In this document: positions 840 to 64,000 of the stretch, piece after piece
Layout of the letters: every line of letters starts with the position of its first letter
Position numbering within the stretch: the stretch's first letter is position 1
Assembly: GCF_026571515.1 (NCBI RefSeq)
Contig: NW_026856986.1
Coordinates: 310,001-374,000 of the forward strand
Origin: Ruditapes philippinarum
Lineage: Eukaryota
Reading direction: 5' to 3'
Length of the DNA stretch: 64,000 nt
The notes under the pieces: generated by a model
What the model saw: only the letters and a program-made list of their open reading frames with translations
What the model was told of the DNA's origin: nothing
The model's database searches: none
Program-made: the position numbers and the translations under genes

Positions 840-3560
840 CTGATGTCCATTCAAATTTCTCCTCCGCGTTTCTGTCATGGAGTCCTAACCATATGGTATG
901 ACTCTTGATACTTTCAAGATAGTGAAATAGGAAATCCTGCTCCTCTTGGCTTCTTATATCAACTAATTGACCCTTTTTGCTCAAACAATTCTTTTCCGCA
1001 TGTATCCACGAGACTTTTGTTTGAACAACTTCGTAACATTTGTTTCTGAATTGAGCAAGCGTAATTGATGGGGTATGCTTTGCTTCCGACTGTAAAATCA
1101 CAGGGCAGAGATTTGTATGACCTATGAAAAATGATGAATCAATTTCTAGTTTTGGTTTTAACATTATGATTACATTTTCAATAATAAACCGTTCAAGACA
1201 TTGGTTTTAACTTTCTAAAAAAAATAGAGACTTATGTATAATATAGATTTTGTCTACATTTCACGATAAATGCATGTGTTATAAGCTGTAGTTAATACTT
1301 TTACGAAAGAATATCTATAAACATTGCGTATTTAAACACTTTATTTTATTCAGACTGTACCTTCTATTAGTGTAACAGTTGTCTGAAATGTAACTCGTGG
1401 TGTACTTGGCAAAGTGCTTGTAGTGACAACAGTTGTTGATGTCTTAGCAGACGTTGACGGGGAAACGGTTGTTGATTCAACAGTAGTAACATTTTGTACA
1501 TAATTGCTTAACGGTGATGAAAATCTATCAGTAGTTGTTGGAGGAACTGTCGGTTGTGTGACTTTAATTTTGAATGGCGTGCTTGAACCAATAGTGGACC
1601 TTGATGTGGAATTCATTGCAATGAAGCTCGGTGTAACTTTCGTTGATGAGGTGACTGATGTAACATTCATTGAAGGATTTAATGTTGTCAGGTTTGATGG
1701 TGCTGTTGAAGATGGTATCGCTGCGCTTAAAGTTTTTGAACTAGTGAAAGGTATAACTGTTGATGCTTCGGGAGTAGTAGTGGTAACATTAAATCTTGAA
1801 ACCGTTGTTTGTCTAACTGTGACAGGTTTGGTAGATGCAGCTGTCGTGGTCGTAACAACAGTTGTTCTGGTGCTTGAGGATGTTGTGGGAGAAAGAGTTG
1901 TTGTGGAAGGCACTGAAAATATACGTTTGGGGTTAACTATTAATAAAAAACTATAAGAAGATAAGCAGATTATTTAAAGGTTCATTATATTAATATTTCT
2001 TTTTTTTTCAATAACAGGGTTTTCTTCTGCTACAATTTTTTAACATAAGGAAAGTACCACGAAGCCACAACGAATTTTAAACAGAGAAACAGTGTTCACA
2101 TGTATACAAAAAGACCTCAGATTTTTGTTTCGCTCAGAGTTTTCACTTTATGAAAAACACAATTTATCCAAATCATTAGTATTACCAATTGTCACCTGAA
2201 ACCGAACTAACAATACTAAATTATATTGGACAAGTTGACAGCTGTTTAGCAAATGCAAACAATAGAATGATATTGGTACTCGACGATGTATAATGATCTC
2301 TTTATTTCACACGATCAATTCCTAAACAGAAAACATAGTAAACAGTAAAATTAAGGAAAAACCTCAATATATTATATATAAGATACAGTTATTTTGAGTA
2401 CAATACGAATTTAATACGGAATTGATTGACATGGGGCTTAACTGAAAAAATTACATGATAAAATTAATACATTTATCCTCGTCCGGTATGCTCCCTGGAC
2501 ATGTTTGTACTTGTAACTGCGCATCTTCTTCAACAAAACCTAACTGAAACAAAACGTAAAATTTTATGTTTAATGGTCATTATCAAATGTGCTGTAGCTT
2601 TAGTGAATATACTCCCCTGAAAGTAGTCATTCTTGTTTTGAATTTTATTAAAAAAAGAAACATCCTCAAATAATTATAATAATAGACCCTTGAAATACTT
2701 TAATGGAAGTACCATTTGACAGGAAATATATTTGCATATTTGTCGGGAAAGAACATTTGAGATGTCCTTAAGTCTCCGTAACATATGTTTATTCAAGTGC
2801 ACCATGTGGATATTTTTTCAATTTATCAAAATGCATCTAAAGATCCACCGTCATGTTCTTATTTGAATCATTTCTTAATTGATTATCAAACCAGCTTTAA
2901 TCATCAATTCAAATGTAAAACATAAAAATAAAATGGCAAATACGAGCAAGTAATACATATTTGACTTTAAAACTAAAGAAATAATGAATGACATTAGACT
3001 CATACCTTATGTTCAAATGCTAATGCCAACCAACCACTAGCTGCTGTGACCCCAGCCGATGGTTTACAGTCAAACTCGTACATATATCCTAATAACTTCC
3101 CACTACTGGAGGTCTGTTAAAAATTTAAGCATGAAATAAATAACGCTGAAGTAGGAACCATACTTTGCTTATTATTTAATGATTTCTTATTTGACAGCGA
3201 AAGAGATTTATTTTGAAACTGTACATTAAATTTCAAAAGGTCAATTGGAAAAACGCTTAGAAGTTACTTTTTATTCACAATTCGAAGTAAGCCAAATCGT
3301 TTCTATTCAATCATCGGAAAAGGAAAAAAGGTGCTCTTGTATTTTGTAAAAGGTCTCAATATTTCCATCTTTGATATATGGAAATGCATTTTTATCTGAT
3401 TTAATCTGGTTTAATTTACAGTTGAAGAACAATTAAAAAATTTGTATACAATTACCGTTTGAAAAACAGACTTTTCGACATTGTAGTTGCAAATACATTT
3501 GTAGTCGCAATTAACTCGTACTAGAACCGCGGATAGAATGGAAATGATGAACGTTAACAT
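840..3560 (-). CDS. Gene A (3'-partial): secreted SH3b-like domain + mucin stalk + C-type lectin domain protein
   Basis: Phase-compatible GT-AG exons: 3456-3560 (MLTFIISILSAVLVRVNCDYKCICNYNVEKSVFQT, signal peptide), 3006-3113 (TSSSGKLLGYMYEFDCKPSAGVTAASGWLALAFEHK), 2471-2543 (LGFVEEDAQLQVQTCPGSIPDEDK), 1361-1912 (Ser/Thr/Pro-rich mucin), 840-1121 (CTLD first half: LCP..CYEV..SWIHAEKNC..IWLGLHD..FEWTSG). Exon-for-exon paralogue of gene B; the remainder is presumably left of the window. Confidence 0.85.
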
Positions 3561-6010
3561 GCTTTCTGAAATGTAAATCGTTCAAAGTCATACCTTAAGA
3601 CACATTAAGCTCTGTTCAATTTTTTACCCCTTAAAAATTTATGTCTTAGAATTCTAAATTTTTTTTAAATGAGTTTTAAAAATAACTTTTAAGATGAGAT
3701 GCCGGAGAAAGTTACTGCATTTAAAAATTTTTTGCATAAAAAATACCAAATGTAAAAAAAGTAGTTTTTGATTTTCCCAAAATAAAATTTAAAAAAACTT
3801 TCTTTTAATTGTTTAAAAACAATGAAGCATTTGCAAATGAATATTTTTTTATTCTTTAAAAACTATAACAAGACACTAAAAATAAAAAGCTTTAACAAAA
3901 ATAAAAACATTTCTTGAACAATATTGTTATTAAAAAAATCATTTGCTTAATAGGATGTAATTAAATGTTGCAATATGATTTTAAAATCGCATATAATCAT
4001 TTATAAAGTAAATATTAATAAAATCAATAAATATCTAAAATAAAAGACTCAGTAAGCATTCCTATGATTTCTTCCATTCTTAGATTATCTTCCCTTTCTT
4101 TTCCATATATGTAACTTTATATAGTACATAATATTAATAAAGTAATGATAATATCATCTAAACCATCATGATCTAGCAATGTTATATAATAATGAATAAA
4201 AATGTGTTTATTATAAACCTAAAAACACATCTCAAATACTTATCATATAAACCCTTTGATGTCTATATCGACTTATTGTAACAACTTTTTTTATTTTATA
4301 TAGACGTTACTTTATACCACAACGTATCAAGACCTGAAACTGTAATGAATAAATTATAATTTAAATTATTACATTTTAACAAAAATAGATTTTGGTAAGT
4401 ATAAAAATCATACCTTTTGAAAAAAAAATCAATGTTGTTTTTTATCTTCTTTTCAGTTACAATAATATAAGCACTAAGTATGATAAAGATCTTACTTGTA
4501 AACAAAGACTTTTTTCCATAAGGCCACTATTTTGTCACCTTACTTTCAATAATACTCTATTTTTTCACCTTACTTTCAGTAATACTCTAAAGATAATAAA
4601 AACAAGGACTGTTTAAATTCGTACAAAGATTAACCTAAAATATCATAATAGACCTAATTTAAGGTTGTCTATATGTTGAGTTACACTTTGAGACCTCTTC
4701 TAGCTCCGTTCAAAGCCAATGTTCTAACGCAGCGCCAGTTCTTCTATGACCAATTTCCATAAAAAACTGTTCAGATATCGCTTTTTGAGATGCCGTTATA
4801 TATTTTGAAAGAGAAATTTAATACAATATGATTCATAGAAAAGGAGGATAAAGTATAAATTGGCGCTTATTAAAACATTTTCAAGTATTTGTAAATAAAG
4901 TAGAGTATAGGAGGATTAAATAATAGAAATATTTTATAACTTTAATGGCTCTGGACCGATGTAATAATAACAATAACTTGATGAGTGGGAAAGTCACTTG
5001 TCACTGCTTTAACATGCAGAGTAACTGCTATACACAATGTGTACGCAGATTCTTTTTTACTTCGGATAACTATTCGATTTTCTTCTCATTTTTATAAAAT
5101 TTTGATAAACCGATCGTCATGACAGGCATTTATATGGTCAATATTTGTAAGTATATAACTTTTAAGAACATAATTTCTCTTTAGTCAGTATTTTTTTTGT
5201 ATGTTTATTTGTTTGTTAGCTTGTTTAAAACTCCGACAGTTTTTGGTAATATCAAAAATTACCATTTTCTCAGCAAATAAGCTATATCTAATCCCCGGGC
5301 ATAAAAAGAAGAAACATTTTAAAATATTGTTTGAAAAAAAAAATTTTACAAGGGGAATTTTTTTGCGCCAGGGTCTGACCAGGAATGCTGCTTTAAAAAA
5401 CCCATAACCTCCCTTTTTCAGCGATAAATTAAAAATTTTTGTCGGTACAAACCTTGCGTCTCCTTGTTTCGCTTTTACAAAAGGGACTTTTATAAAGAAA
5501 TAATTATTCATAAGTTGTTTGATTCAATATTATTTGTATTTTGATCAGCCAAAAAAAATTTGCGTGTATTAAATTTACGGGAAAAAACATTAAATTTCAG
5601 AAAAATTATCAAAAACCCCTTAAACCTGGAAATAATAGCCCTTTTTCTACCGGACTTATACGTTTGCTAAAAAAATTCACATCTTCACCCTTTACCCCCA
5701 AAAACTTAAACGTTTCCCAAAAATTGCAGTTTTGGGGTTATTTATGTAAAGAATTAAGTAGATTAAGCTTAGTGATAACCAGTTAGCGTTATGTAGTTAA
5801 AAAAAGGTAAAAATATATGTTCAGGGCTGTAACGGAGGCATCCGAAGATATTAATCTGTAAAGTGCAAATGTTTACAAATCGAAAGAACAAAATTCATAC
5901 TAGTATATAAAGTACAAACTAAAGTAAGGCGATATATAAGGTCCTTTATTTTTTATTTTTTGAGATGCCAAAGATTATGTATTGCAAAGACAAAACAATT
6001 CCAAGAAGAC

Positions 6011-9000
6011 CTAGCCAATAAAGGAAGGCCCTGATACAGTATCTGAAAAAGAAAAATTAAATTTTAGATTCATGAATAATTTCAAATGATAAAGAAGTAT
6101 GTATATAGATAAATTTAAATTTTTTAACTAAATAATAATGTCTTTCAAATCAACCCTTTACCAGTCTTCCTTAGAATGTAAATCTAAGAACTCCGATGAG
6201 TTTTTCACATATATTCAGTGTTTGGTGTTAATTATCTGAAAAGAAGAGATACACCTTTTACCATAAAATAAGCAATCATTCCATGATAACAATATATTTC
6301 ATATTGATTAAATAAAGGCTTAATTCGGGCTAAAATTATTGTTCTTTAAAACCAATAATTCGCTATAACCGTGCTTATCATATCAATCTAGGATACATAT
6401 CGTAGTCAATCATTGTATACATTTTATATTTGTTTATATTATTATTGATGTTGTTTTTGCATTTGTGGATAAGGAATTAGATTTTTATTTCCAACGTTAC
6501 AGTTTTCATTTCCGTACCACTTGTTATAACGATAATAATATAATCCTTCAAATTTAAAGCTTAGAACATTTTATTGATTGACAATTATGAAAAACTTGCT
6601 CACTGTATTGACAAAGAACGGGGTGAACTTCACCAACAGCATGGCTATGATGGTGAGAGGATACTGTATGTCCGCACGGGATATCGTCCCACTCCCCATT
6701 TTTGTACGGAATAAACGCAACACAGTCTTCAACACTGTGATCTACAAAGTTACTCAGATGTCCTGGTACCCAGTTAAAGTAGTGAGCAGCGTCCCCTGGG
6801 TCAGAAAAATAATGTTAACAAATCATGGAACGGCTCATGTGCCTGGTATATGACTTTTCTTTTTTTAAATTCACGGCTGTATCTTATTCATTACTAAATT
6901 TCATATGTCTGGCTAAACTCTTTCAAACAGTACATCCCAAGTAAGTAAACTGTCTAAAATTCGACCAGTCTGTTACTTATATAGATTTCTTTATTGTTTC
7001 CTTATTTCAAGAACATGGTTTTACAAGATTCGAGCAATATGACACTCTCACGACCCGTGTCACTGATTGTGAAAGCTATCCAGCTAGCTTTAAGCTACTT
7101 TAGGAACGCCCGTAGGTTTTTTAAGCTTTTTCCCCGTGGGGTCCCTAAAAAATTTGCCCCGGGGCACCGGAGGTCTTCCCCAAACCAGAAAAGCTAGAAA
7201 ATCTTTCATATGACCTCCCACTTTTTTGGGTTTATGATTTTAAAACCAAAAAAAAAAAGCTTTTGACTTTAATTATTCTTATTTTTTTTTAGGGAAATTT
7301 ATAAACCCTTTCCCATCATTTGCATTTAGAAAATGAAATTTTTAATTTAGAATATTACATTTTTTACCCCCAAAATTTCGTGGAAAGTTTGTAAAAATGC
7401 CATTTCAGTTTTTATCTCAAAATATGAAAGGTTTATATTTTATCACCAGATAATACAAAAATTTTAATTATAAAATGTCTCCCGGGCAATGCCCTATTAA
7501 CATACCCAAACATTTAAAAGTGTTTAACCCGATGTCCAAATTTGGGAAAGTGTTTCATGGAGCGATAGTAAAGGCCGATCCAAACAGCATGATGGGGAGA
7601 ATACCTGTGCATAAAACCCTGAAGAAACTTTTGTTCTTTAGCATTACGTATGTGTGCTAGATGCCCTCCTCTATTGTGACAAAATTGTTCTGCTTGGTGC
7701 CAAGTCTTTTCAATATCGGGAACAACTTCGTAACAGTTCTGACCATACTGACCAAGGGAACCACCGTCTCTTGATACTTGCGAATGTAAATGCTGCGAGC
7801 ATAGATTCAAATTCCCTGTAGGTATGGCAAATGCGTTGGAAATTTAACAGTTTGACACAAAAACAAAGATATTGGCAATAAATTATAGGTATAAAATAAG
7901 AGATACTTAAAAAATAATATAATTATTTCCGTGCATATTACTCACATATTTATATAAATCATTGAATATTTCATTTGTCTAGCAGTTGTACGTATGCTCA
8001 CTTTATTTCCGTTCAAATATTTCCGTGCCATCAGCACATCCTGGAGGATATATAGTTAACATTTGCAATGGAATCGGCAAATTAGTTTTCATACCTGTCA
8101 GCTATTATGATAATTTTTAGTCATAAAGATAGAACTATTACAGTAGCAAAATAACAAATATAATTTAAAAGATAATTATAATTATTAAAAAACGATAATT
8201 GAGCATATACGCAATTAAGAACGCTACTTTACCGTCCGGAGCGTGACCGGAAGTTGAAACTGAAAACAAATAATTGAGAAATAATATAACAGGGATTATC
8301 GTTTATTTTATTTTAAGAATTAATCTAAATATTTCTAAATTTAAATGAAATATGTGTATAAAATCCACGTGATTTTTAGATATTAATAATATTTCTGTAT
8401 TAACAGCCAAGCAAAGTTAACCACGGCCAAGTATTTCTTGCTCCTTGACATAAGAAAATTATAGCTTATAGTAATAACAACTTAATGCAAGTCATAGTTA
8501 AGTCCTGACAGCAGATTCAACACTTGAGTCTAAAAATAAACCGCATGGCCACTATTTATTGTATAACTATTTTGTAAAGAAGAATAAACATATGTTGAAA
8601 ATCAAAAATTAAAAAATACTAACTTACCTGCAGTTGCATTTTTAATAGCTGTAAAGATCAATTATTGTGTTAAGGCCAATTTGAAGTATACCATTGACGT
8701 CATATAGTGTGACATATTACATTGACGTCATACCAAATGAAGAATAATAATGATTTTAAAAAAGTGAAGTTTAACATTGACTTCATGTAAAGTGAATTTT
8801 AACATTGACATTATATTAAGTGAAGTATTACATTTACTTCATATCAAGTGAAGTATGACAATAACCTTATATAAAGTGAAGTTCAACATTGACTTCATAT
8901 CAATCAAATATTTACATAGACTTTTAAAAATTAAGTGAAGTATTACATTTACTTCACATCAAGTCAAGCGAAGTATAACATTGACTTCATATTAAGTTAT

Positions 9001-12000
9001 AATAAGCATGATATATACCGAAACAAAGTAGCTCATTTTCTTTACATAAAGCTAAGACTAACATTGACACCATATGATATCGAGTTCTTTTTATACGCAG
9101 TCATTACGCATTAATCAGAAAAGGGGCAAAACAAAAGTAACTTCAAATTTTCTTAAATTAAATATACGACAATCAAATAATTGAATATTTGATGAATCTA
9201 GAAAGTATAACTGATAGAAGATGATCAATACAGGCAAAAATAGTATTTTATCTTCTCATCTCTCGTTCGAGAAAACAAATTAAAAAGGAGGTTAACTAGC
9301 TGTATTCTTCTTTACTTAGATATGACTCTGCAAAGAACATTTATTTTTTTTTGTTTCTGCCAGGAGTAACTTTTTTTTCTAAACTTTTAGAATTAAGATA
9401 ATCAACAAAGTTCACGATTATCAAATGGAGAGGAAAAATAGAAAACGGTTGTCTATAATGAATAAATTCGTGTCATAGAGAAGGTTAATGATAACAAAAT
9501 AATAGAAAACACCGAGGTATTTTGACAATAAGGGACTGGAAATATTTCAACGCAATTTTTATACCAACGGATCTATTTCTGGACAAATATCATGTGTGCA
9601 AATATTCAGCTGATTCCGTCACCCCGTTTTTTCAAGAATATTTTTTTTATTGTGAAAATAACTGAAATATGAATTGCTTTCCACTTAAATTTGGCTAAGA
9701 ATTGCACAATTAATTAATTTAATTTCAAGTTTATTTCTATGTTACCCATTGCAGATTTTTCCAATTTAATTGCTTCACTTGATATTTGTAAGATTTTCAA
9801 ATGTTATGTTTTATGCCTTTGGACCTCAGATGAGTTCATTTAAGATGTTTGAAAACATATACAAACCATATTGGCAAATATATGCATGTCCATGTCCGTG
9901 AACAACTTCGGTATGATGGGTGTCCCCTCCGCAATTTACGTCATCCCATTGGCCAGTAGTTGCTTGCATAAATACACAGTCTTGATGACCATGGCGATGA
10001 TTCTTGCGACCAGGTTTCCAGTTTGTATAATTCAAGGAATCGCCTGAAATATTTATTTGTATATTACATTTTTTATCGTTACGCAAACGATTTTTGACAT
10101 TTATATCTCAAACTTTACATTCATGGGATTAGTATACTAAAATGATGTTTAAGTAAATAAAGATGCACAATTCTTTGTGAGTAACTTATCAAAGTAATAA
10201 CTACTGAGAATGGTTTGTTTTATGACATAATGATAGATATAAATCGTCTTTTTCAACTACTTTATTGCACAGCTATAAAAATGTACATTTCAATAAAAGG
10301 CATTGCACGTTTTTACGTGCATTAACATCTTCAGAAGTACGGGGACACATTTTAAGCCCGAGCCCGCAGAACGAGGGATTTTATTAGTCTGAGGTTAAAT
10401 GTATGCGTCCAAATTGGTAATTCCGCGTTTCGTTATTCTGTATTTCGTACAAAGAAAACATTGCTTTTGCCATTCGTTCCACGTGCTAGTGCAATGTCAT
10501 TTGTCAATTGTTTTGATTATATTACGTTGCATTGAACTGTCTTACATTGCACCTTGAGTCTCGCATTTTAAAATACGCAACAGCGGCCCGCGGTCATGAG
10601 AATCTATCCGTCAATGCATGTTTTCTTCTTCGTAAATGTATACCTGTGAATACATTTGTTATGCAATAATAACGTTTAAAAACCTGTGCTGTAAGGATTG
10701 CAGATTGTATGAAATACATTTATTCGAAAGACGGAGATAAATAATTGAAAATGAATATTTTTTGCCTTACCAGAAGACCATTCAAATTTCTCTTCATAAT
10801 TCCTGTCGTTTAAACCAATCCAGGCAGTATGTCCACGATGTTTCACAAGAAAGTTGTAAATGAAAGCTTGCTCCTTTTGATTAGCAATATGCGCTAAATG
10901 CCCGCCGTTATGTTGACAAATGGACTCTGCGTGTGACCAAGTTACGTTAGTTTGGTCAACTTCGTAACAGTTCTCTCCAAATTGTGCAAGAATTGCATGA
11001 TCTCTCTTAGCAGCTTGATGAGTCCGGCGCGAACATAACTCTAGATGTCCTTGAATTAGAAATAAGACAGACATTTACATTTGTTCCTAAATACCCTATA
11101 TGTAAAACTTTTTTCACACACTTCAGACAGATTGTCAAAAAGCAAGTCTAAATGTAACACATAACTAGCACTCTATTTCTGTGATGGTTTGCAGTAATAG
11201 TTTTCTTTCAAATACCATAACATACCATGTTGAACTAATTCTTTAAGGCCCACCTAGTCCCTAAAATGCCATCTTTTACATTTTGCACACTCATTTCATA
11301 TTTCGCATTCTGTTTCATTTAACAGAAAAACACTCAGTGATCATATACCTGTTACATCCTTTGCTCTTTTTTATTTGCTTTTTGCAATAACAACAGTTAC
11401 GATGATTAAGTATTTTTTTTTAAATCAAAATGCCACTTTGTTTACATTTTTGTGACGATATGCCAATTTATTTAATATATTTGGCGATACTAATTACCGG
11501 TGATTAGCATATAATATGTTTTTAAATTATTATCTAAACAATATTACACATAAGTTGGACATTTCCACAAAAATCAGAGGCAAAATGCACCTTACGTATT
11601 TGTATATACAAAATAAGCAGAAGGAGTATCATGCATTCTTTATCCATGACTTTCATTATAATATTATAATAAGCTAGCTAAAATGTCTTTTGAAGATGTT
11701 ATTGAAAGTATATGTTATATACTCTTATTATTATTATCATCAATTCCCCTTCCAAAGGTATAGTTATAATTATTTATATACAAAATTCCCTTGTTCTCTT
11801 GTTAACTCTATGCTATTATAACGCTGACGTTTTGTACTTAATATAAAAAAACAACTAAGCTGTTTTTTTTTTGTAAGTTTGTTTTGTTTTACGAAAATAA
11901 ATCTACCTTTGATTGTATTTGAAGTTATATACGGAGTGCTTGTTGTTGAAGATATTGCAGTTGTCGCAGTTGTTGGAATTTCTGTCGCTTGAGTCGTTAA

Positions 12001-50165: not shown

Positions 50166-53100
50166 TTAACCAATGAGTGATGGTCCGGTTGAAATACCTA
50201 AAAACGGAAACGTAGAAAAAATATCAATAGCATATGAAATTTTTTTTATTCCCTTTCACAATAAATATTGTAAAACAAGTTCATAAAATTATAATAGTCA
50301 AATATCAACATGAATAAAACAAAACTTTCTTTACACCTTTCTGCTTCGCATAATATAGATTGTAAAATATAATCATTTTTAGAAAAATTAATAATGCAAC
50401 AAAGTGTTAAAAACAGATAATGAAAAAGATTATATAAATTGGCATAGAGGCGGTCTTAAAGACATAACATTAATCAAAGGGCTGCAAGCTCTGTGGTATT
50501 TTCTTTGCAATCTAAAAAGTACAGTATATATGTATGTATTTTCCTGTTTAAGTTTATTTGTATATACTATAATTCATCCTGCAGGGCACCGAGATGCAGC
50601 GACTGTGTTTACAAGACAAGCTCTGTTATAAAATTCAAACATGTTTGCATATCATTTACTAGTAAAAGTAAAAAAAAAAGACCGGAGGAAAAAAAGTATA
50701 GACTGTGTTTAGATTTTTTACTATAACAGTTTGAGTTTGATACATACGGAATTTTGCATGACTAGAGTTGCATTAAAAAATCATTTATTTTCATTTTGTA
50801 TGACAGCAAACACTTTATCCTTGCATATCGTGGCTTCTACCTTAAAAAAGACACTTAAATAAAAAGTTCCCCTCGGCTGGGATTTGAATCCCAGACCTCT
50901 CACACCTTAAACGGTGGGTTACCCCTGCATTTCGGGGAAGTTATACGAAGAACGCCTGAATAGAATCAAATAATTCTAAATTCAGAATTTCCATTTAGGG
51001 TTTGTAATCCTTAATATTTTCGAGGTATTTTGTTCACGATAGATCTGTTGTTTAACATTGATATAAATACTTTAGCGAAACTTTTCTCGCCAAAACAGCC
51101 CGACATGTATATATTCCACTTCTTGAGAGTCAGTTTTATTTGTGTAATACGCTCTGAAGTATTCGGTTATCGACATCGCTAAAAGTACCATTTTCATTGA
51201 TTAAAATCATATTTATCCGCCTAATTTGTGAATGTGCATTTAGTGACAATACTATAAGCCAGCGCTACTTTTAAACTTTGAATGCGTTGTAATTTGTCGG
51301 ATACTTTAACAACAACAAAAATGTTTCTTTAACATCGCTAGTTTCAAGCTGTTTTGTGAACCAGTTGTTGTTAGGTTTGTCGTGTAGCGCTATGCCAGAG
51401 ATTGAATATCAGCATAATATTCAGAAAATACAAAAACGAAATACTTACTGTATTCACACAAGAGTGGATGGGTTTCCCCGGAAGAAGACGTGCCACCAAA
51501 CAAGGAGTGATGTGTATACCCACATGGTATATCATCCCATTGACCATTTTTATACGGTATCAATACAACACAGTCTTCTTGACTAGAGCTTGCATAGTTC
51601 GCAATGTGTCCCGGAACCCAATTTGTATAATGAGTATATTGCCCTAAACATGTTTATGCAAATGCAAGGTCTGTGAAAATACTTCTTAATAGTAAGATCA
51701 ACGCGTTTGTATTATTTCAATTGTCATGATATTTATTTAACTTAAATTGCATAATATAACAATAATATATATTGTTAGTTCTTAGCCCTTTCGCCGCCAG
51801 AGGGTTATTAATTTATTGATCACCTATATGCCAGAGGGTTTTCTATGAAATTTCTATATTATATTATTAACATAATCATAATAATTATTTGTTATAAGTA
51901 TTACAATAATTAAATATGTTTCCAAATCTGAAGTAAAATAATAATTATTGTCGATGGTATAATTATCTATATATTTATTATAATAATCATTATTATCATT
52001 ATTATTATTTTTATTATTAATATTATTTTTATTTTCATTATAATTATTATTATTATTATTATTATAGAAATGACAAAAGCCGTCCAAATGGCAAATACGC
52101 TGAAAATAACAAGGACAGCATATGCCCTTCTTAATTCAGTGAAAGGGTTAATGTTACATAAATATTTGTAATGTTATTATAAAACGTAATGTAATATTGT
52201 CGCATAGTATTTCTAGGCTCCTAGCTAAAAGATACTTAATGACAAATGAAAAACAATAAACTTTTATTATATAAGTTCAACCTGATTCCCAATGGAACCG
52301 TCCCTCCGTGTGTCTGTCTGTAAGACCAATCCAAACAGCATGATCAGGAAAATGACTCTTCATAAAGCTTTGGATAAAATTCTGTTCCTGTGAACTAGTT
52401 ATAAAAACAAGATGTCCACCTCTAGAAGAACATATTTGTTCAGCATGTTGCCAGGAAACTTTTTCATTTGAAACCAGTTCGTAACAACTTTGATCATGCT
52501 GTGCAAGTGTGCCATTGTCTCTTTGTGCTTGTAGTTGAAGTCTGTGTGGACACAGGTTAATGTTACCTGAAAATAATCTTCTGTATACTCATCTGAATTG
52601 AAAAGAGGTTTTTATCTAAATTTATCAATTTCTCATACAAAATACATTATTAATTATGATAGTGTGTGTTTAATCTCATGTAAATAAGGAACTCTTTGTG
52701 TAACCAAATAAGGAATATATACAGAATAAAAATGTAACCGTAATGTCAACTGAATAGTAATTATATTAATTTATATCAAGTGAAAAGTTTTTCCTCACCA
52801 TCAATAGTTGGATTTAGTGGATTTAGTGGAGTTACTGTGGCTGAAAGAAGAAGAAAAATCTTATATGCTATTCTTATGAGAAATAATATATCAACAATAA
52901 TAACACAAGACACGTTTCGTTTAGCTTTTATTCCACTTATTATTATATCTAAATAATTTATTTGTTTAAATATTAAGCTTTTAGTTATACATGAAAGGTT
53001 GTGTTCAAAATAGATGGTCATCACTTGTAGAAAAAACAGCATCTGGCAGTTTCAAAAATGTCTTCACATCTCGTTTTAATTTCTTGACTTTAATGAAGTT

Positions 53101-56100
53101 TGTATTTAATTGATACAGTATTACCCCAAACCACTTTCACACAAAAAATTCCATAATTCGGAATTGAATTGAATAGATTTTTTTCAAACAAAAAATATCA
53201 AACCATATTGACATATGAACGCATGGCGAATTCCCTGTATTAGTTCCGATAGACCGTTATCACCACCGCATTGTATATCGTCCCATTCCCCTGTAGTTGG
53301 TGTCATAAATACACAATCTTCGGAGTTGTGATAACGATAGTCTTTTCGTCCAGGCTTCCAGTTTTCATACGTTACAGCATTGCCTTGAATGCAATTATTA
53401 TTGCATTATACGATAATACATTAATGTCACTTTATAACAAAGTCAATAAGCTACGTGTCATCATATTTTAATTTATTATCGCTTTTCAACAACAATGTGA
53501 AAAAGTTATATGCACCGAAAATTAAGAAAATTGAAAATGTATTTCCGGTAAGTATTTGGTTTGTGCTATAAATACGTAGGTGTTTAGACAGCATTAATGA
53601 TTTTAACAAAAGTGATATTTTACAACAGTTCATTGATTACCTGACGTCCATTCAAAGCTTTCTTCAATGTTTCTATCATGCAAACCCAACCACACTGTGT
53701 GCGTATGATGCTTTACAAGAAAATCAAAAATAAAATCTTGTTCCTGCTGGTTTGCTATGTGTATCAAGTGGCCTCCATCACCTTTACAAATTGACTCCGC
53801 GTGAGACCATGATACGTCTGAGTCAACGATTTCGTAGCAATTTTGTCCAAATTGTGCTAAATGTTCTCCCTTTGACTGAGCGGCCAGCTGTTGAATTCTT
53901 TGTGGGCATAATTCAACATGACCTAACAACGGAATAGAGATATACGAAAGTTATATGAATGGAAGAACAGGCATCATGCTTACTTTGTGAATCATCATTA
54001 ATTTTTAAAACTTCTTAAATTAGAGAATTTTTTAGATTGTACAATACGATATTAGTGTTACGTTCATGTTATGTTACGTGCCCTTAATGTGATCATTTTC
54101 TTGTGTCTAGTGGTACCAGTTTTCTTTTTAAATACTAGTTCATCACCCATAAGAAAGTGGTCTCTGCCTTTGATTTCTTCTTAAAGCAGCTAGTTGTGGT
54201 ATGCAACCTTATTACCACCATCGACATTTTAAAAATCTCCTCCAATTTTTTCACGTGTACATTTTGTGCTAGAAGACCATATGCGTTTTTCCTACATGGA
54301 ATGTCACGAACATGTCACCTTAATTTTTTTATGCCTTTAGAACATATTTGTGTTTATGTTGTTTAGTTCAAATGTTCACCTTTGAACAGGCTTGATCAAA
54401 AACCGCCCACAAGTATTCAATTTCTGTCGTATTTATTCTTAATTTCACATTTAAATAATAATTTTTGTTTTTTAATATACTTATAGCCTTTCAGAAAACT
54501 TGGTTTTTGGGCTGGACATTTGTAGTGTTGCCGTAGTCAATTTTTGTTGTCGTCCGTTGTTGGTTAAAGTACTTGTTACTCTGTGTTGTTGTTGTTGTTG
54601 TTGTGACTTGCTGTGGCTGTTTGATGTTGTGCTTGTTGGTAATCTTGTGGTTGAACTTGTCGTTACACAAGTGGCTACTGTTGTTTGTGAAGACGGCCCA
54701 TTGTTGTTGTAGAAGAAAGCTGTAGTAGGCACCGTTTTTGTTGTTTGAGGGCTTGTTGTTGTTCGGTAAGTTGGATGGTTCTCTATAACTTGTTGTGATT
54801 TGTTGTCAATGCATTTCTGTTGTGGTAAATTACCTGTTGAAAATGGTGGTGTTTTTGTTCGTTCGTAAAATTTGTATATGTGTTTTCTATCTCAACAGAA
54901 AACCCTTTTGAAAAATCCTTCAAAATTCAGCACAGAAAAGGAAAACATTGAAGCATTTGTTTATATTAATTATCATGCTGGATTTCAATCCATCTCATAT
55001 TCGAAAATATGCCAAAAAGTGTACAATAACATCAACTTAAAGCCATAAATAAATCAGAGTGAAAGGGGACGGTAAAATTGAAAAATCGATGATTACAAAA
55101 ATAAGGGTTATAATATTTTCGGAACTAATCCTGTCACAGGGATCAGCCGAAAATAGCGAGATATGTGCTTAAATGACCATTGACAATCAATTATTGGCTT
55201 AACGTGGGCAAAATAACATGGTATTCCCGACGGACACACATATAGATGACCAAACCCACTAACCATCCCACCATATGGGGTTCTGCGGAATTGAGACTGG
55301 GTCTCATAAAGGGCAGCCGGAAAATTGCAAGATATGAGCTAAAATTAACCAGTTATCTTTTGCCCAGGGAAATGTTATCATCTCTGGCTAGCCAATCCAG
55401 CCGGGAACAGCAGGACTAGCCATAAAGTGTTACGGCTGCGCCGGCTGTCTTGGTTACTTTTATAAACATTGTTAACGCACAAAATGAGTTTTTCTTGGGA
55501 ACTAATTTTCAGTCATTAGTAAACAACTGAAAATTGAAAAAGATTAAGAAGAAATGGTCTACTTAAGAATACCTGGCATGGTTTAATTTCTGCAATTTTT
55601 AACGTCTGTTTCATTTCCGGAGCAGTTTAAACCTCCACCAGTAGGTGCTGGTTTTGTAATGTTCGTATTCTACTCTGTTTTCCATTCCACATGTATTGCT
55701 ACAAGAGAACCACTCGGACCATTAAGACCAATTTCCATCAACTAGAAAGAAATTTAAAATTTAGGCAATTTTAATGAGAGAAAATAGAGAAATATGGATC
55801 GCTGTACAATTAAAGAAATTATACTTTGAAAAAAACCCTTTAAGTAAAATAATTTTTTTTTTTAAAAAAGCATTTTTAAATGTTTTTAGAGATTTTGTAA
55901 TCAATTACTTTTAATAAAATGGTAATATTTTGTACAAGTTATATATACAAATTTTGCAAATTACTTTCCCCTTTTTAAATTTTAGTTAAAATAATACTAA
56001 AATTTAAAACAAAAAACAAAAAAAAATGTTATTTCAATCATACTGTTTGCAAGATCACAAAATCGGGGCATATAACCCGGGCTGCTGAGTATCACTGCAA

Positions 56101-58972
56101 ACATTTGTCACGGTATTGAGGTAGGCACAGTCGATTTTATGATCGTCAATACACGATGATGCTGAAAATATTGAGATGCTATGTAATAAGGATACATTTT
56201 GTATGTTTATTATATTTCATTGTAAACTATTCATCTATAGTGAAGTGGTATTTAAATAAATTTGTCAATAAAGCATTGATAATTTTGATCCGAATTTAGT
56301 ACTTAAAAACAAAACAAACAGAAAACACACGCGCATGTTTGCATGCAAATTTAATGTAAAAGTTGTTTGCATAAAACATGATAAAAAAACAGTTGCATTC
56401 GTCATTAAAAGTAGAATAATTATACGTTTGAAATGTTCACAAAGTGGTTTATTGCATCTATCTGAGCTACAACATTCATGACAGTCATTATTTTGTCCTT
56501 GTAAACCACGGCCAACCAATCCTGTCGCAACTCCTCTATGAGTACCACATTGCTGTAACGGAGTAAAAGAAAGCACACAAGTTAAACATTATTTAATGAT
56601 ATACTTCTGAAAAAAGAAATGCATTGCATCGAAAGCACGTGGGTTGTATTTATAACGAAATCATAAAAGCTAAAGCAAACTTTGCACATCATATAACTTT
56701 AAATATTTAATGTTAGCTCTTATTTGAGTTGCAAATTTAAAAAAAAAACATAATTTAAATTGGTATTTACATGTTTGTCAATACATCCTAGTGAATACAT
56801 CTGATTCTGTCCAACTGTTGACAAACCATGGAAGCATGTCTGCCAAAAAGCAAAAATTGAATTAAATCATAATGTTTAAATAAATTGGGTTTAACCCCAG
56901 TAATTTGTTTGTCAATATTTAATTTTTTTCTTTTTTTTTAAAATTTACTGTTATCTTAATCCCTTTTTAACAAAAAGTCATCCAAAAATTTATTTAAGGG
57001 TGGCCCGAAGTGTTTTTCAAATCATAAAAGGGGGTTTTCGAAATAAAACATTTAAAAACCCAAAAAAACAATTTTTTCTTAATTTAAGGATGTTTTACTT
57101 GTTTATGTAAAAACATTTTTTGAAAATTTTACATTGAAATACACCCAAATTTTAGCATTTTCCATTAAAAAACAAAAATTTTGAAAAATTAAAAGGGAAA
57201 AAAACCCCCCCCCAACCCCTTTCCCAATGAAAGGGTTTTGAGCCAAATTTTCTAAAAAAAAGATTTTAAATTCCCCCCGGAAAACTTTTTAAAAAAAAAT
57301 TTGTTTAAAAACCAAAAAAAGGGGGAAAAAAAAAAAATTTTTAACCCTTTTTTGGTTTAATTTCCCTGGTTACTTGAAACCAGGCGCATTTAATAATGTC
57401 GTTACACTGATTGATATTTGTTGAGTTAGTGCATACATAACACTCCAGCGATGCTTTAAAAGAGAAATAACGGCACGAATATTTGAATTTTATAACATGA
57501 AGGATAAGGATTTTTACCAACACTATATTATATGTTCAAATAATTGAATAACAAGCAAATTGAATTACATATTGTAACTTAATATGAGAAAACAATGCTA
57601 ACTTTTTAAGACAAAAAGAAAGGAAAAAAGGCAACCAATAACATACATGTTTAACACGCTTTACAATGGTTTCATGCGAAAAGATATTCAAATAATGATA
57701 TAATACTTTAAAAAATAACTAAATAAACATACTATTATAAAGTACAAAAATGATTTAAAAAGATATTTTAATAACTAACCTGCATTTCTTATATAAGCAA
57801 ACCAAAAGAAAAACACTTTGATTGCTGTAAAGTAAAATAAGCATTTTTACAGAACGGTTTTGTCACGCAAAATTATGTATTTGTTAGAACTTTCGATTTC
57901 ATATACGCTATGTTGTAGATAAGAATATAAAGAGGCTAATTTACATTTACTTGTTTTATGAGGTGGCGTTATGCATGATTTTAAGTCAGTTCCTATTCTA
58001 AATAAGGATAAATATATTATATTATCCTAACGATATCTCATAATTTGAAATAAATTACAAAGACCCCATTATTGAAACAAACCACAAAAAAATGTGGCCT
58101 TTGATCGGATATAAAGTAATGTTTCCTATCATTTTCTTTTCAAATAGAATCTTATGATTAAGCACCTGTGAATAAAACAGTTCAAGAGGTTTGTCTACTT
58201 TTCAGCAATTGTATGTCGGAAGCAGTATACCTATATAGTGACATATATAGATAAGGATTCATTCAAAAGGATAAGAAATTTCTTTTAAGTCATCATTACT
58301 AAATGCGAGAAAGTTATCGTATAATTCTTGACATATTGTAACAGGTCTGTAGAGTATCTTAATAATATATACATGTAGTTTACTAACGTGAAATAAAGCA
58401 AACATTTACTAAATGTCTTTTAAACGGGCATATAAAAATTTTAAAAAAAGTCATTGGTTCATATATTTTTGTAGTTTTTAGGGCACATCAAGTCTTTTAT
58501 TATCTTTTGGTGTCCTGTTATGAGTTCTAAATAGGACCCATTGGCATTTTCTTAACTGTTCAACCATCTTTTGCTTCTGTTACTTTTTTTGCCATCAGTT
58601 CAATGATCGTGATTTAGTATTTTGTGAGGAAGTCAAATACTACTTTGTTTGCATTTTACTAGTACATTCACGACACAAGATTTTACCTTCAACGCTACTT
58701 CCTCTAGATTATATATTTTCACCAGGTAATATGCATATGACATGCTCTAAAACCATTCTTTAAACGTTGAAAGAACTCTTGTCTATCGAAGGAAAAATTA
58801 AATCGTTTCTGATAATGTGCCTTCGAAGTGGTCCGAAAATATTAGAAAATTAACATATCAAATTACGATATTTCATGACTATTTGTGATTTCAAGAAAGA
58901 AAAAAGAAAGAAAAGATATTTTTAAATGTCCACAAAAAAAATTAAATTCCTACTTATCATGTTCAAATCCAT
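50166..58972 (-). CDS. Gene F: secreted Ly6/uPAR-like + ShKT + TSP1 + mucin + tandem C-type lectin protein (middle exons garbled)
   Basis: Exons 58954-58972, 57780-57824, 57374-57453, 56771-56839, 56426-56552, ~56043-56161 (ShKT), ~55574-55741 (TSP1), ~54488-54860 (mucin), 53641-53922 + 53204-53383 (CTLD1), 52799-52840, 52282-52566 + 51449-51643 (CTLD2), 50166-50197 (ISTGPSLIG*). The ShKT, TSP1 and mucin exons carry many 1-nt indels within a visibly low-quality stretch; closest paralogue of E. Confidence 0.75.
50440..51398. mobile_element. ~950-bp insertion in the last intron of gene F (unclassified)
   Basis: The intron is 1251 bp versus 303 bp (E) and 287 bp (G); short inverted ends tggcatag / ctatgcca. 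Confidence 0.45.
51782..52151. mobile_element. piggyBac-like MITE, copy 2
   Basis: ttag|ccctttcgccgcca ... cagtgaaaggg|ttaa; interior homologous to 18746-19078; absent from the E and G paralogous intron. Confidence 0.75.
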
Positions 58973-58985
58973 TTTTTTTTGTCTA

Positions 58986-59074
58986 AAGATAGATAAGATA
59001 AAAAAAGGCATACGACTCATAGAAGAATTAATGTCACTTGATAAGAGAACCAATGTCATTGAAGGGGAGATAGT
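58986..59074 (-). promoter_or_regulatory. GATA-site cluster upstream of gene F
   Basis: agatagataagataa..gactcat..cacttgataagagaa..ggggagatag. Confidence 0.5.
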
Positions 59075-60634: not shown

Positions 60635-63600
60635 TTAACCAATGATTGAAGGTCCGGTTGAAATACCTAAAAACAGAAACGTAGAAAAGATATCAATGGT
60701 ACATGATGATTCTTTTATTCCTTTAACATTCAAATACTGTAATGTACGTGAACACATAAATTATTGTTATATTGTAACATGAATAAAACAAACACTTCTT
60801 TTCACATCTCTGTTCTCAATTATGTCAATTTTAACATTTAATTATTATTAAGTAGATTTTATAATGCAACTTAGTTAATAAATCTGAACAAAAATAATGT
60901 AAAATGGCTTAATAGCGGATTCAAAAAGTTAAATGTAAAAACGAAATACTTACTGTATTCACACAAAAGTGGATGGGTTTCACCTGAAGAAGATGTGCCA
61001 CCAAACAAGGAGTGATGTGTATGCCCACATGGTATATCATCCCATTGGCCATTTTTATACGGTATCAATACAACACAGTCTTCCTGACCAGAGCTTGCAT
61101 AGTTCGCAATGTGTCCCGGAACCCAATTTGTATACTGAGCATTTTGTCCTAGACATGTTCATAGAAAAGCAAGGTCTATGAAAATACACGTAATTGTAAA
61201 ATTGGAATTGCGTGATATAACAATGTAGGAAACTACATTATAATGCTGTTTGTTCTTCTTGTCACATACATATTTGTAATAATTTATGTATAGACTCCAA
61301 GCAAATAGATACTAAATGGCAAATGTAAAACAATAAACTTATAATACAAAGTTCAACTTGATCCCCAATGAAACCGTCCCTCCGTGTTTCGGTCTGTGAG
61401 ACCAATCCAAACAGCATGATCCGGGAAATGACTCATCATAAAGCCTTGGATAAAATTCTGTTCTTGTGAACTAGTTATATATACAAGATGTCCGTGTCTG
61501 GAAGAACAAATATCAGATGCGTGCTGCCATGAAACTTTTGCATTCGGAACGAGTTCGTAACAACTGTGTCCATATTGTGCAAGAGTGCCCTTGTCCCTTG
61601 CGGCTTGTTGATGAAGTCCGTATGGACAAAGGTTAGTGTTACCTGAAATTAAATGTTGATTGATAAAGATTTCTATTGAACAGTATCAAATCAAACTGCA
61701 TATAAACTGCATTCAAATTGAAAATGCCTTTCTTTACTCCTGAGTTCATCAGATTATTTGAAAGAAATGATTCTCTTTTGGGTCTATAAAGGCCTTATGT
61801 TGTGACTAATACAAATGTCAAAATTGACGAAACTATGTCTTGAACAGATTATTTTTATTTTTTTGTTCTATTTTTTTTCTAATCAAGGCAGTTGTAATTT
61901 TAAGATATTATACTAAATCAAAAACATAAAAAATCGTTATAACATACAGTGTTTATGATAAAACAGCTTTCAATACATTTTGTATGTTAAGTGAACCTAC
62001 AACACTATCGTTTCTCATTAACTAATCCACGAATTATGAATTAACTTCTTTTACAAAATACCTGAACATATGTTACTCACCATCAACGTGTACATATGAA
62101 GGACTTGTTACAGCTGAATCAAAGAAAAATATTTCTTGTTGAATAATTTAACAAAAATTGACAATTGTAAGTTATAATCATATAAAGCGTTAGAAACTGT
62201 CTGTTCTTTTTCGTTTGTAAAGATTTTATGTTTCCATCAAAATACTGTATCATTGAAACGTGTTGTAAATACAATTAATTTCTTATCAATATCTAAAAAT
62301 ATTTTACCAACCATCAGTAACAGTTATTGTATTTGTTGAGGGTTTCACGGCTGAAAAAGAGACAAATTCTTGTATCAAAAAATCGGCAATACCGTTTTAC
62401 GTAAACAACTGTTTAAATATCATCAGCAAGACACAAATGTCGGCATTAACAATCAATTTTTTCACAAAAGAAAGGTAAGAAATAGACATACCATACTGAC
62501 ATATGAATGCATGACGATGTCCCTGAAATAGCTCAGAGAAAGCCTTATCACCACCGCATTGTATATCGTCCCATTCCCCTGTAGTTTGTGTCATAAATAC
62601 ACAATCTTCGGAGTTGTGATAACGGTAATCTTTTCGTCCAGGCTTCCAGTTTTCGTATGTTACAGCATTGCCTTGAATGCAATTATTATTGCATAATGTG
62701 ATAATAGATTTATGTCATTTCATAACAAGTTTGATAAGCTATGTGTCATCATATTTTTATCTACTTATCGTTTTTCGAAAAAGCGATATGCAATTAAAAT
62801 TTAGATTATTGCAAATGTATTCCCGGTAAGTATTTGGTTTGCGTTATAATGTAGGTGTTTAAACATCAGCATTAATCATTTTAATCGAAAATGATAGTTA
62901 ACAACTGTTACAGTAAAATGTATTACCTGACGTCCATTCAAAACTTTCTTCAGTGTTTCTATCATGCAAACCCAACCACACTGTGTGCGTGTGGTGCTTT
63001 ACAAGAAAATCAAAAATAAAATCCTGTTCCTGCTGGTTTGCTATGTGTATCAAATGACCACCTTGACCTTTACAAATTGACTCCGCGTGTGACCATGATA
63101 CTCCTGAGTCAACGATTTCGTAGCAATTTTGTCCAAACTGTGCTAACAGTTCTCCTCTTGTCTGGGCAAGCTGCTGTATTCTTTGCGGACATAATTCCAC
63201 ATGACCTAACAAAGGAATAGAGATATGCGAAAGTAAAATGACAGAAGATCAGACATCTCAAACGTCATGCTTATTTTGGGTATAATTTCAAAACTCTTGA
63301 ACTGCAATATTGATGATGAACATTTTCTGAACATTTTTTAACTTTTTAATATTAAAGATACATGTGTATTTAAAGATAATTGATGGTCGCACAATGTGAT
63401 ATCAGTGTTGCGTTCATGGTGTGTTATGTGCACTTAATTCAATCACTTCTTGTGTATGATTGTTCCAGTTTTCTATTTAAATACCAGTCCATCACTAATA
63501 AGAAAGTGTTCCCTGCCTTCAAATTTGACTCAGCAGCTATTTGTGTTATGACCACCGTCGACATTTTAAAATTGTACTCCCATATTTTCTCGTGTGCGTT

Positions 63601-64000
63601 TGTTTCATTAGAAGATCACACGCGGCTTTCCATGGAATGCCACAACCATGCCACTTTTAAGGTTCTGTGCCGTTAGAACATATTGTGCTATGCTGGTTTT
63701 CAGGTCAAATTGTTACTTTGAACAGGCGCGTTCAAGTATTAAATAATGCCGTATTTCAACATCCTTCTCCAATTAATTATAATTTCACATTAGATAATAA
63801 TATTTGCTTAAATATACTCATACCTTTGAGAATACTTGGTTTTGGGGTGGTAATTTGTTGTGTTGTCGTGGTCAATTTTGTCGTCGTCGTTGTTGGTAAA
63901 GTACTTGTACTTTGAATTGATGTAGTTGCTGTGGTTGTTGATGTCGTGCTTGTGGGTAATCTTGTGGTTGCACTTGTTGTTGCAACAGTGGTTGTTGTAG
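60635..64000 (-). CDS. Gene G (5'-partial): mucin + tandem C-type lectin protein of the same family
   Basis: Exons 63824->64000 (Thr mucin), 62927-63205 + 62492-62671 (CTLD1), micro-exons 62312-62350 and 62081-62113, 61358-61642 + 60954-61148 (CTLD2), 60635-60666 (ISTGPSIIG*). Confidence 0.85.

Follow-up and report, generated by a model that had tools for sequence, protein, structure and literature searches.

Analysis of a 64,000-nt window of the Ruditapes philippinarum genome (by the window we mean this whole stretch, G000:C5473:310001-374000, within a 624,455-bp contig; about 31% G+C, zero N) revealed a tandem array of genes that share one body, a mucin-like stalk followed by two C-type lectin-like domains (CTLD1 and CTLD2), behind two unrelated N-terminal heads. 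Seven co-oriented paralogous units, A to G, lie in the window and at least eight on the contig, spread over about 80 kb; all array genes in the window are on the minus strand. The unit letters follow rising coordinates, which makes G, on the coding strand, the furthest 5' of the seven. The account favoured here, which we hold with a probability of about three in four as a whole, is that the array belongs to a bivalve family whose ancestral head was SH3b-like, that some copies exchanged this head for a Ly6-ShKT-TSP1 head from a large donor gene family, and that the products may serve as secreted binding proteins.

Units were delimited from reading frames between stops and from local alignments against reference exons defined by their coordinates. 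Exon alignments recovered the seven co-oriented paralogues that the original prediction had placed on a common mucin and double-CTLD body. The body exons are homologous across the units and follow the order mucin, CTLD1a, CTLD1b, a micro-exon of 33 nt (size from D), CTLD2a, CTLD2b and tail. Identity between units at these exons is 82-95%, far above chance expectation, and E and F are similar in their introns too. Both of the predicted head types were seen on this body: units A, B and G carry a three-exon, SH3b-like head with four cysteines, while units C to F carry a Ly6/uPAR domain in three exons followed by an ShKT domain, with or without a TSP1 domain. Every join between modules in D is in phase 1, with AG and GT at the RNA-supported positions, which confirms the phase-1 joins that exon shuffling requires; AG and GT are also present at the homologous positions in A, B, E, F and G. 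The only phase-0 introns are two within the Ly6 domain and two within the SH3b-like head.

Gene D (30351..37310, minus strand) is intact and transcribed. Its 13 exons comprise an ATG exon (37310-37292), a signal-peptide exon (36297-36253), three Ly6 exons (35875-35796, 35452-35384 and 35124-34998), ShKT (34731-34609), mucin (33894-33748), CTLD1a (33408-33130), CTLD1b (32865-32686), the micro-exon (32546-32514), CTLD2a (32057-31773), CTLD2b (31541-31350) and tail (30382-30351). The TSP1 exon is absent and the reading frame is open throughout. The ATG exon, which encodes MDMKIL plus one base in D, was found through its conservation in D, E and F and is without read support.

RNA support for D was obtained from Logan contigs of runs X1, X2 and X4, which belong to three studies, one declared as RNA-Seq and two only guessed to be RNA. 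The contigs showed GT-AG joints on the minus strand from the signal-peptide exon to the first Ly6 exon (36253 to 35875), within the Ly6 domain (35796 to 35452 and 35384 to 35124), from Ly6 to ShK (34998 to 34731), from ShK to mucin (34609 to 33894), from CTLD1a to CTLD1b (33130 to 32865), from CTLD1b through the micro-exon to CTLD2a (32686 to 32057) and from CTLD2a to CTLD2b (31773 to 31541). The depth of the ShK to mucin joint was 65.6 and 47.8 in X1 and 5.1 in X2. An X1 contig also carries a 14-nt overhang at the start of CTLD1a that matches, as reverse complement, the end of the D mucin exon. The joints and this overhang therefore place the head and the body of D on one spliced RNA, as had been predicted, with contigs of three runs joining them. 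Independent evidence that the SH3b-headed type is likewise one mRNA is given by an intron-free JGI contig of 1,708 nt (P0157), which encodes head, stalk and both CTLDs.

The SH3b-like head is encoded by three homologous exons in A (3560-2471) and in B (14411-13061). The original prediction had taken G as lacking a head; that proved incorrect, an SH3b-like head being present just beyond the window at window-equivalent positions 64760-66801. A search of a library of 1.8 billion proteins with the body returned, as nearest matches, proteins of 450-650 residues, and most of the closest begin with the SH3b-like head. The head follows the motif (D/E)YxCxCNYNVE..GYMYEFDCKP..W..AFEH..GY...Q.C.G..P..D, and its four cysteines are invariant in 25 homologues. 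An AlphaFold2 (AF2) model built with 25 homologues gave the head a confidence (pLDDT) of 93-97 and seven strands. Residues 18-95 of the R. philippinarum protein P0162 matched bacterial SH3_3 domains in the Atlas with a template modelling (TM) score of 0.73-0.79 and a language-model feature score of 0.90. Once many CTLD matches were set aside, Foldseek against viral models found phage SH3-domain proteins over 68-83 columns, the best with TMt 0.74 and a root mean square deviation of 2.7 over 68 columns. An SH3b-like fold for the head is thus supported by the predicted structures. The head exon has 19 matches in the genome, on contigs that also hold the double-CTLD body, and a remnant of this head was looked for inside C to F and none was seen. 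A protein search with the head alone returned 2 proteins among 9 candidates and is uninformative on how widespread the head is. The head was also considered as the front of peptidoglycan-recognition protein (PGRP) genes, as in oyster, and this was rejected: no contig of the genome carries both the head and Amidase_2.

The second head begins with a Ly6/uPAR signature, that is, an LxCYxC start and a CCxxxxCN end; in D the domain reads SLECYKC ... CCSSDKCN and has 12 cysteines over its three exons. Searched alone, the first Ly6 exon scored 17.6-18.5 bits against Toxin_TOLIP in the window copies (18.5 in D; cut-off 21.2) and 15.8 bits against UPAR_LY6, while Ly6 exons 2 and 3 alone gave no profile match. 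In a neighbouring gene of the same head type (L002) the first Ly6 exon reached 21.6 bits against Toxin_TOLIP, and CD59 and UPAR_LY6 also matched. For the third Ly6 exon the Atlas returned an unnamed cluster at 0.82, which was uninformative. The ShK profile (PF01549) scored 13-16.6 bits against a cut-off of 20.9, with profile positions 1-37 of 37 covered in every copy, and the cysteine spacing C-x7-C-x9-C-x9-C-x3-C-x2-C is found in all intact copies. TSP_1 (PF00090) scored 51.8 bits on the E exon (cut-off 21.6); the TSP1 exon is intact in C and broken in F. Across C, D and E the Ly6, ShK and TSP1 exons are 88-100% conserved in protein, and all cysteines are kept apart from the one lost to a stop in E.

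The same modules are abundant elsewhere in the genome: 67 matches were counted for the third Ly6 exon and 132 for the ShK exon, and the two are paired on many contigs, which defines a family of at least 60 loci (including L002, L003, L007, L028 and L009-L027). Flanks were sampled for 19 Ly6-ShK pairs and, within the contig of the window, for three neighbours at C5473:414-448 kb, which lie on the strand opposite to the array. Most sampled loci have three TSP1 exons, followed in at least 12 by a C1q domain (Pfam 38.9 bits), while three have two or three EGF exons and then a fibrinogen domain (Fibrinogen_C, 24-47 bits). The layout is signal peptide, Ly6/uPAR in three exons, ShKT, three TSP1 and then C1q or EGF-fibrinogen; no description of it was found in the searchable literature. 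In exon size and phase this family and C to F agree: the third Ly6 exon is 127-130 nt and of phase 0/1, ShK 123 nt and 1/1, and TSP1 171 nt and 1/1. On the window's contig the genes of this type (C5473:414000-447999, plus strand) lie 45-75 kb from the array, a distance also given as 104-138 kb, and no contig of the genome other than this one holds both this double-CTLD body and a Ly6 exon. The Ly6-ShKT-TSP1 head thus appears, by comparison of exons, to be a cassette of a large C1q/fibrinogen gene family, hereafter the donor family.

Phylogenetic trees were constructed exon by exon rather than from joined domains, using the CTLD "a" exons and, separately, the shorter "b" exons. The "a"-exon trees separated CTLD1 from CTLD2 with support of 98/94. 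In them A grouped with Mercenaria P0023 (100/98), B grouped with Mercenaria P0155/P0159 (97/88 and 99/93), and C to G formed one Ruditapes clade (96/95 and 94/95) whose sisters are Mercenaria proteins, two out of three with SH3b-like heads. The "b"-exon trees agreed wherever they were resolved. In these exon trees, the phylogeny check that had been proposed, the CTLDs of C to G proved to be relatives of those in A and B, as expected from the original prediction. SH3b-headed homologues occur in Mercenaria, Mactra and Mya, besides the JGI contig, and homologues also in Dreissena, where the comparison covered the body. As far as seen, the family is restricted to heterodont bivalves. The SH3b-headed orthologues already exist as RefSeq models under purely automatic names. 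Judged from these trees, the SH3b-headed type is the probable ancestral form and the Ly6 head the derived one. Since the trees pair A, B and G with Mercenaria proteins, these lineages would predate the Ruditapes/Mercenaria split, and the Ly6-headed copies would have arisen later within the G lineage.

Alignment of E and F with G located the exchange. DNA homology with G begins 59 nt upstream of the mucin acceptor in E and 136 nt upstream in F and runs past the mucin exon in both, and it shows no extension to the last head exon of G, about 500 nt further up. The homology starts inside the pre-mucin intron, and the predicted breakpoint therefore lies in the phase-1 intron ahead of the mucin exon.

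The body downstream of this point was identified with both profiles and models. Lectin_C (PF00059) matched all four CTLD half-exons of E (3e-12, 0.023, 8e-12 and 7e-4), with 47.7 and 46.3 bits on E half-exons against a cut-off of 22.6 and 79-175 bits on full models. The AF2 model of CTLD1 matched solved CTLDs with TMt 0.76-0.87 (Foldseek, PDB), the best including mannose receptor, Endo180, CD23 and a lectican CTLD; the PDB matches listed were CTLDs only, with no solved SH3b structure among them. Across 25 homologues there is little or no variation in the VWLGL/VWIGL motif and in the cysteines. In all copies CTLD1 reads NWKPGRK ... WDD and CTLD2 NW(V/I)PGH ... WDD. The tripeptides EPN or QPD with WND at calcium site 2 are absent from both domains, only the proline and the W-D being kept. 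Because KPG or VPG stands in place of EPN or QPD, canonical calcium-dependent sugar binding by either CTLD is unlikely on these sequences; they do not demonstrate the "lectin pair" of the original prediction, and "lectin" is here a courtesy name.

The mucin exon encodes a Thr/Ser/Pro-rich stalk, variable in length and with pLDDT below 50 in the AF2 model; it is presumably O-glycosylated. The tail exon reads ..ISTGPSLIG before the stop in C to G and ..SG(A)P(S)..(I/V)G in A and B. It was observed as a separate phase-1 exon of about 10 residues in every member, finishing in ..(L/I/V)(I/V)G before the stop, and the same ending was found in the Mercenaria and Mactra homologues and in P0065 (..PSLIG, ..GSIIG, ..VAIVG and ..SIVIG). 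The conserved C-terminal glycine could be an amidation or sorting signal. The macrophage mannose receptor, C-type mannose receptor 2 and aggrecan have CTLDs in common with this family and are the source of the automatic RefSeq names. Membership of the mannose receptor family was rejected: Lectin_C is the only match on the models scanned, there are two CTLDs and not 8-10, a ricin-type or FNII domain is missing, and the tail has 9-10 residues. Membership of the lecticans (aggrecan) was rejected as well, with no Xlink match above cut-off (15-17 bits, inside the CTLD only) and no EGF, Sushi or CCP domain.

Pairwise ratios of nonsynonymous to synonymous divergence (dN/dS) over the body were 0.15-0.30, with 0.22 for D against G. 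Synonymous divergence (dS) of the body was 0.13 between E and F and 0.36-0.60 in the remaining pairs. The reading of E and F as two haplotypes of one gene was rejected on this dS of 0.13 and on their differing lesions. At the CTLD2b exon dS was only 0.09-0.18 among D to G (31350-31541, 39926-40120, 51449-51643 and 60954-61148), and 0.4-0.7 at other exons in the same pairs, which suggests gene conversion of this exon among the four units. The low dN/dS and the lesions (C, E and F are disabled and B is frameshifted in the assembly) therefore do not support the "diversifying" family of the original prediction; the array looks like the outcome of purifying selection with birth and death of copies, and not of evident diversifying selection or a working repertoire.

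The history that would account for these observations begins with a protein made of a signal peptide, a four-cysteine, all-beta SH3-like head, a Thr/Ser/Pro-rich stalk, two CTLDs and the tail. After the Ruditapes/Mercenaria split, recombination within the phase-1 intron ahead of the mucin exon of a G-like copy would have brought in a new 5' part, namely promoter, two signal-peptide exons, Ly6/uPAR in three exons, ShKT and the first TSP1 exon. The frame would be kept at this head swap since both introns are of phase 1. Duplication of the chimera would then have given C to F; D would have lost its TSP1 exon and remained intact, and C, E and F, as they stand in the assembly, would have been damaged later.

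Several points weigh against this account. Even the closest copies of the donor family share only 60-70% protein identity with the array, and their introns are unalignable, so that the proposal names a donor family and not a particular donor copy; the direction from donor family to array is read from copy numbers and the tree. That Ly6-ShKT-TSP1 and the C1q or fibrinogen exons form one gene is deduced from order, strand and spacing and not from RNA. ShK and the three-finger domain of the window score under the Pfam cut-offs (single exons were searched), only L002 reaching 21.6 bits. No SH3 family, SH3_3 (PF08239) included, was matched by Pfam at E<=0.1 in ten family proteins, most of them head-bearing; the likeness to bacterial SH3b seen in the models is therefore limited to fold, and homology is not demonstrated. 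The lesions of B, C, E and F could partly be assembly errors or alleles. Among the runs behind the Logan contigs, three are of low depth or just guessed to be RNA, and some contigs possibly come from paralogues. Function is proposed by inference.

The remaining units differ in their state of preservation. Gene A is represented in the window by its 5' part (840..3560, minus strand), with head exons at 3560-3456, 3113-3006 and 2543-2471, mucin at 1912-1361 and CTLD1a at 1121-840; its CTLD1b, CTLD2a, CTLD2b and tail sit just below the window start (found in L006). Gene B (6014..14411, minus strand) has head exons at 14411-14307, 13918-13814 and 13133-13061, mucin at 12260-11907, CTLD1a at 11049-10771, CTLD1b at 10043-9867, CTLD2a at 7815 to about 7534, CTLD2b at 6795-6604 and the tail at about 6036-6014. 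The RefSeq protein P0162, named "aggrecan core protein-like" [Ruditapes philippinarum], maps onto B at 96-98% identity. As read from the sequence, B carries a frame shift at the 3' end of CTLD2a (7534..7600, minus strand; ..WIGLYYRSMKHF.. and then a stop); another frame yields ..IWTSG followed by gt, and the P0162 model continues into the intron. In both CTLDs of B, His-rich stretches were observed ahead of the last cysteine (6605-6781 and 9868-10041; ..GGDTHHTEVVHGHGHAYICQY and ..CGHTVSSHHHSHAVGEVHPVLCQY).

Gene C (19316..26884, minus strand) is decayed. It retains two Ly6 exons (26884-26805 and 26287-26219, the third being gone), ShK (25287-25165), TSP1 (24971-24801), CTLD1a (23071-22793), CTLD1b (22322-22143), CTLD2a (20682-20398), CTLD2b (19868-19674) and tail (19344-19316). 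CTLD1a is frameshifted, the acceptor of CTLD1b is CG, CTLD2b stops early after HPIM, and there is no mucin exon. Gene E (39594..48143, minus strand) consists of an ATG exon (48143-48125), signal-peptide exon (46358-46314), three Ly6 exons (45942-45863, 45098-45030 and 44849-44723), ShKT (44434-44312), TSP1 (43965-43795), mucin (about 43412-42906), four CTLD exons (42352-42071, 41804-41625, 40681-40397 and 40120-39926) and tail (39622-39594). Its first Ly6 exon (45863..45942, minus strand) has an in-frame TGA (TGC>TGA) at the second cysteine codon, and its mucin exon (42906..43412, minus strand) has indels against G that are not multiples of three (+1 and +23). A fragment of a reverse-transcriptase open reading frame (ORF) was observed on the opposite strand (46598..47818, plus) within intron 1 of E, between the exons at 48125 and 46358.

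Gene F (50169..58972, minus strand) has an ATG exon (58972-58954), signal-peptide exon (57824-57780) and three Ly6 exons (57453-57374, 56839-56771 and 56552-56426), then decayed ShK (56161-56039), TSP1 (about 55741-55571) and mucin (about 54876-54470) exons, followed by an intact CTLD body (53922-53641, 53383-53204, 52566-52282 and 51643-51449) and an intact tail (50197-50169). Its lesions lie at 54470..56161 (minus strand): ShK has two deletions of 1 nt, TSP1 contains stops and frameshifts, and mucin carries many 1-nt indels and has lost its GT donor. The claim that C to F carry a Ly6 and ShKT head, with or without TSP1, on a mucin body thus stood in part: the heads are present, and at the same time C is without a recognisable mucin exon and third Ly6 exon, F retains TSP1 and ShK only as frameshifted remnants, and the first Ly6 exon of E is interrupted by its stop. 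The 3' part of gene G (60638..64000, minus strand) holds mucin ((64261)-63824), the CTLD exons (63205-62927, 62671-62492, 61642-61358 and 61148-60954) and the tail (60666-60638). A and G are intact so far as visible.

An eighth unit, H, was observed upstream of G, 7-11 kb further up, on the minus strand at window-equivalent positions 71058-75155 (L001:7058-9610 and L005:243-1155). Its SH3b-like head is accompanied by a short Thr/Ser-rich exon and a single diverged CTLD-like exon, and no second CTLD was seen in it. Two repeated ORF-bearing elements (..RTAWILIRLRGCAGWSGSMLVAN.. and ..FTSHRHSIGHIATFQLYWWRKTS..) were also observed in introns and spacers of the array, at 19820-20207, 20676-20897, L001:9692-9838, 30576-30797 and 40743-40994; they are probably transposon relics, and one of them flanks the damaged CTLD2 exons of C.

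The alternative that survives best, which we nevertheless consider doubtful, is that the array works as a cassette locus: with every unit boundary in phase 1, a transcript begun at one head would run on into the following unit and be spliced to its CTLD exons, so that few promoters could yield several head/body combinations, E and F serving as donors of body exons. The RefSeq cluster P0154, P0168, P0169 and P0170 bears on it, as all four isoforms begin with the SH3b-like head of G and its mucin exon; two of them (P0169 and P0170) use precisely the exons of G, while one combines CTLD1 of G with CTLD2 of F and one takes the whole body of F. Models that span tandem paralogues are, on the other side, a common artefact. 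One X2 contig of depth 5 joins the CTLD2b donor at 31351 exactly to the acceptor of the second exon of D at 36297. Read-through from E, the paralogue upstream, would explain this joint, and so would a back-splice (circular RNA) or a chimeric assembly; its depth of 5 compares with 77 for the exon. Despite their broken heads, E and F have kept intact bodies with dN/dS of 0.15-0.30, but the divergence of the two is recent (dS 0.13) and intact bodies may reflect too little time for decay. A further point in favour of this alternative comes from Mercenaria mercenaria, where RefSeq P0156 contains another SH3b-like head at residue 550; in P0010, also of this species, a stalk segment is repeated between CTLD1 and CTLD2. 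Each of these two could be a genuine product conjoined across a tandem array or a chimera of annotation, as could the models that join G and F.

Less probable still is that the Ly6-headed copies, D included, are debris, a transcribed chance fusion without a function of its own, and that only the SH3b-headed genes matter. In its favour, three of the four Ly6-headed copies are broken, the protein collection holds no model of the Ly6-headed architecture, and body and Ly6 exon share a contig only in the window's own. It is opposed by the open frame across the 13 exons of D, by its intact splice sites and correct splicing at depths like those of other exons, by the D-G body dN/dS of 0.22 and by the 88-100% protein conservation of the Ly6, ShK and TSP1 exons of C, D and E. 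That heads and bodies are separate genes and the joined contigs read-through or assembly chimeras is very improbable: the cassette does form the 5' part of other genes and the Logan contigs are too short for whole molecules to be visible, but the ShK to mucin joint is canonical and was found in two runs (X1, 65.6 and 47.8; X2, 5.1), the mucin exon begins in phase 1 behind a good acceptor and without its own ATG or signal peptide, and P0157 joins head, stalk and both CTLDs in the SH3b type.

The favoured reading, a head swap in a bivalve CTLD family, can be compared with known systems. Like the multi-CTLD lectins of bivalves (CfLec-3 of Chlamys farreri, PMC4432315; repertoires in PMC10140915), the clam proteins are secreted, have tandem CTLDs, occur in tandem clusters, gained domains by shuffling and have presumed pattern-recognition or mucosal roles; they differ in having an SH3b-like or Ly6-ShKT head and a stalk before exactly two CTLDs, and no EPN/QPD. 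ShK, TSP1, SH3 and Ly6 appear nowhere in the main text of the bivalve survey PMC10140915. The oyster protein MgPGRP5 of Magallana gigas combines SH3b with a PGRP domain, binds peptidoglycan and lipopolysaccharide and agglutinates microbes (PMC11810698). It is alike in being a secreted bivalve recognition protein with an SH3b-type module ahead of the recognition domain, and differs in that its own SH3b is found by standard domain tools and its partner is PGRP, whereas the clam head is without a Pfam match and is joined to a stalk and CTLD pair. A paper on Manila-clam "mannose receptor" proteins lists other domain sets (PMC12321717). Neither architecture was found in searches of the literature (SH3b with C-type lectin in bivalves; Ly6/ShKT/CTLD; C1q with ShK and thrombospondin), and in the protein collection no protein joins PF00090 or PF01549 to this double-CTLD body; the original prediction that neither matches a characterised protein was thus borne out within these sources.

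Two further systems offer analogies. The collectins (CTLD), ficolins (fibrinogen domain) and C1q of vertebrates have a common collagen-like N-terminal stalk. Here, too, by analogy only, one handle, the Ly6-ShKT-TSP1 cassette, stands on CTLD, fibrinogen or C1q domains; the clam handle differs in not being collagen, oligomerisation or protease recruitment by it is conjectural, and its CTLD version is found in a single array. The surface-coat mucins of Toxocara have Ser/Thr-rich cores flanked by ShKT/SXC domains. They are alike in being secreted, with ShKT beside a mucin stalk, and differ in being nematode proteins with neither Ly6 nor CTLDs; no relationship is implied.

The predicted layout begins with a signal peptide and a folded head, continues with a long disordered Thr-rich stalk and two CTLDs, and lacks a membrane anchor. 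It is consistent with a secreted protein that binds at two separate ends, and the earlier term "bifunctional tether" is plausible. The proteins would be secreted multi-site binding proteins of mucus or haemolymph, with one partner for the CTLD pair, another for the head, and the stalk as a spacer between the two ends. SH3b domains of bacteria and phages are binders of cell-wall polymers, and by analogy the ancestral SH3b-like head may bind microbial surfaces, through a cell-wall or glycan ligand. The Ly6-ShKT head would give D the partner served by the same cassette in the C1q and fibrinogen families; since Ly6-ShKT(-TSP1) also precedes C1q and fibrinogen domains, we infer that a common host-side partner is likelier than a microbial ligand. 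A wider proposal, that Ly6-ShKT-TSP1 is a common N-terminal handle for C1q, fibrinogen-related and CTLD families, with read-through mixing of heads and bodies, is tentative and, taken whole, unlikely. In that proposal the handle may serve one downstream partner (receptor, protease or assembly factor) and may be the counterpart of the vertebrate collagen stalk.

What is new here is the head swap from a donor cassette onto an SH3b-type body, together with the SH3b-type family itself, previously only automatically named. The contig offers an unusually complete example of exon shuffling, with acceptor and donor families, the broken intron, matching phases, an expressed product and decaying copies side by side. 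A compact, disulfide-stapled SH3b-like domain, invisible to Pfam, fronts a conserved family of heterodont bivalves whose automatic names are misleading. In a commercially important clam, one Ly6-ShKT-TSP1 cassette stands ahead of C1q, fibrinogen and CTLD tails, and the diseases of this clam (Vibrio, Perkinsus) lend practical interest to its recognition proteins. If the cassette were indeed a shared effector handle, it would offer a direct route to how bivalve recognition proteins signal.

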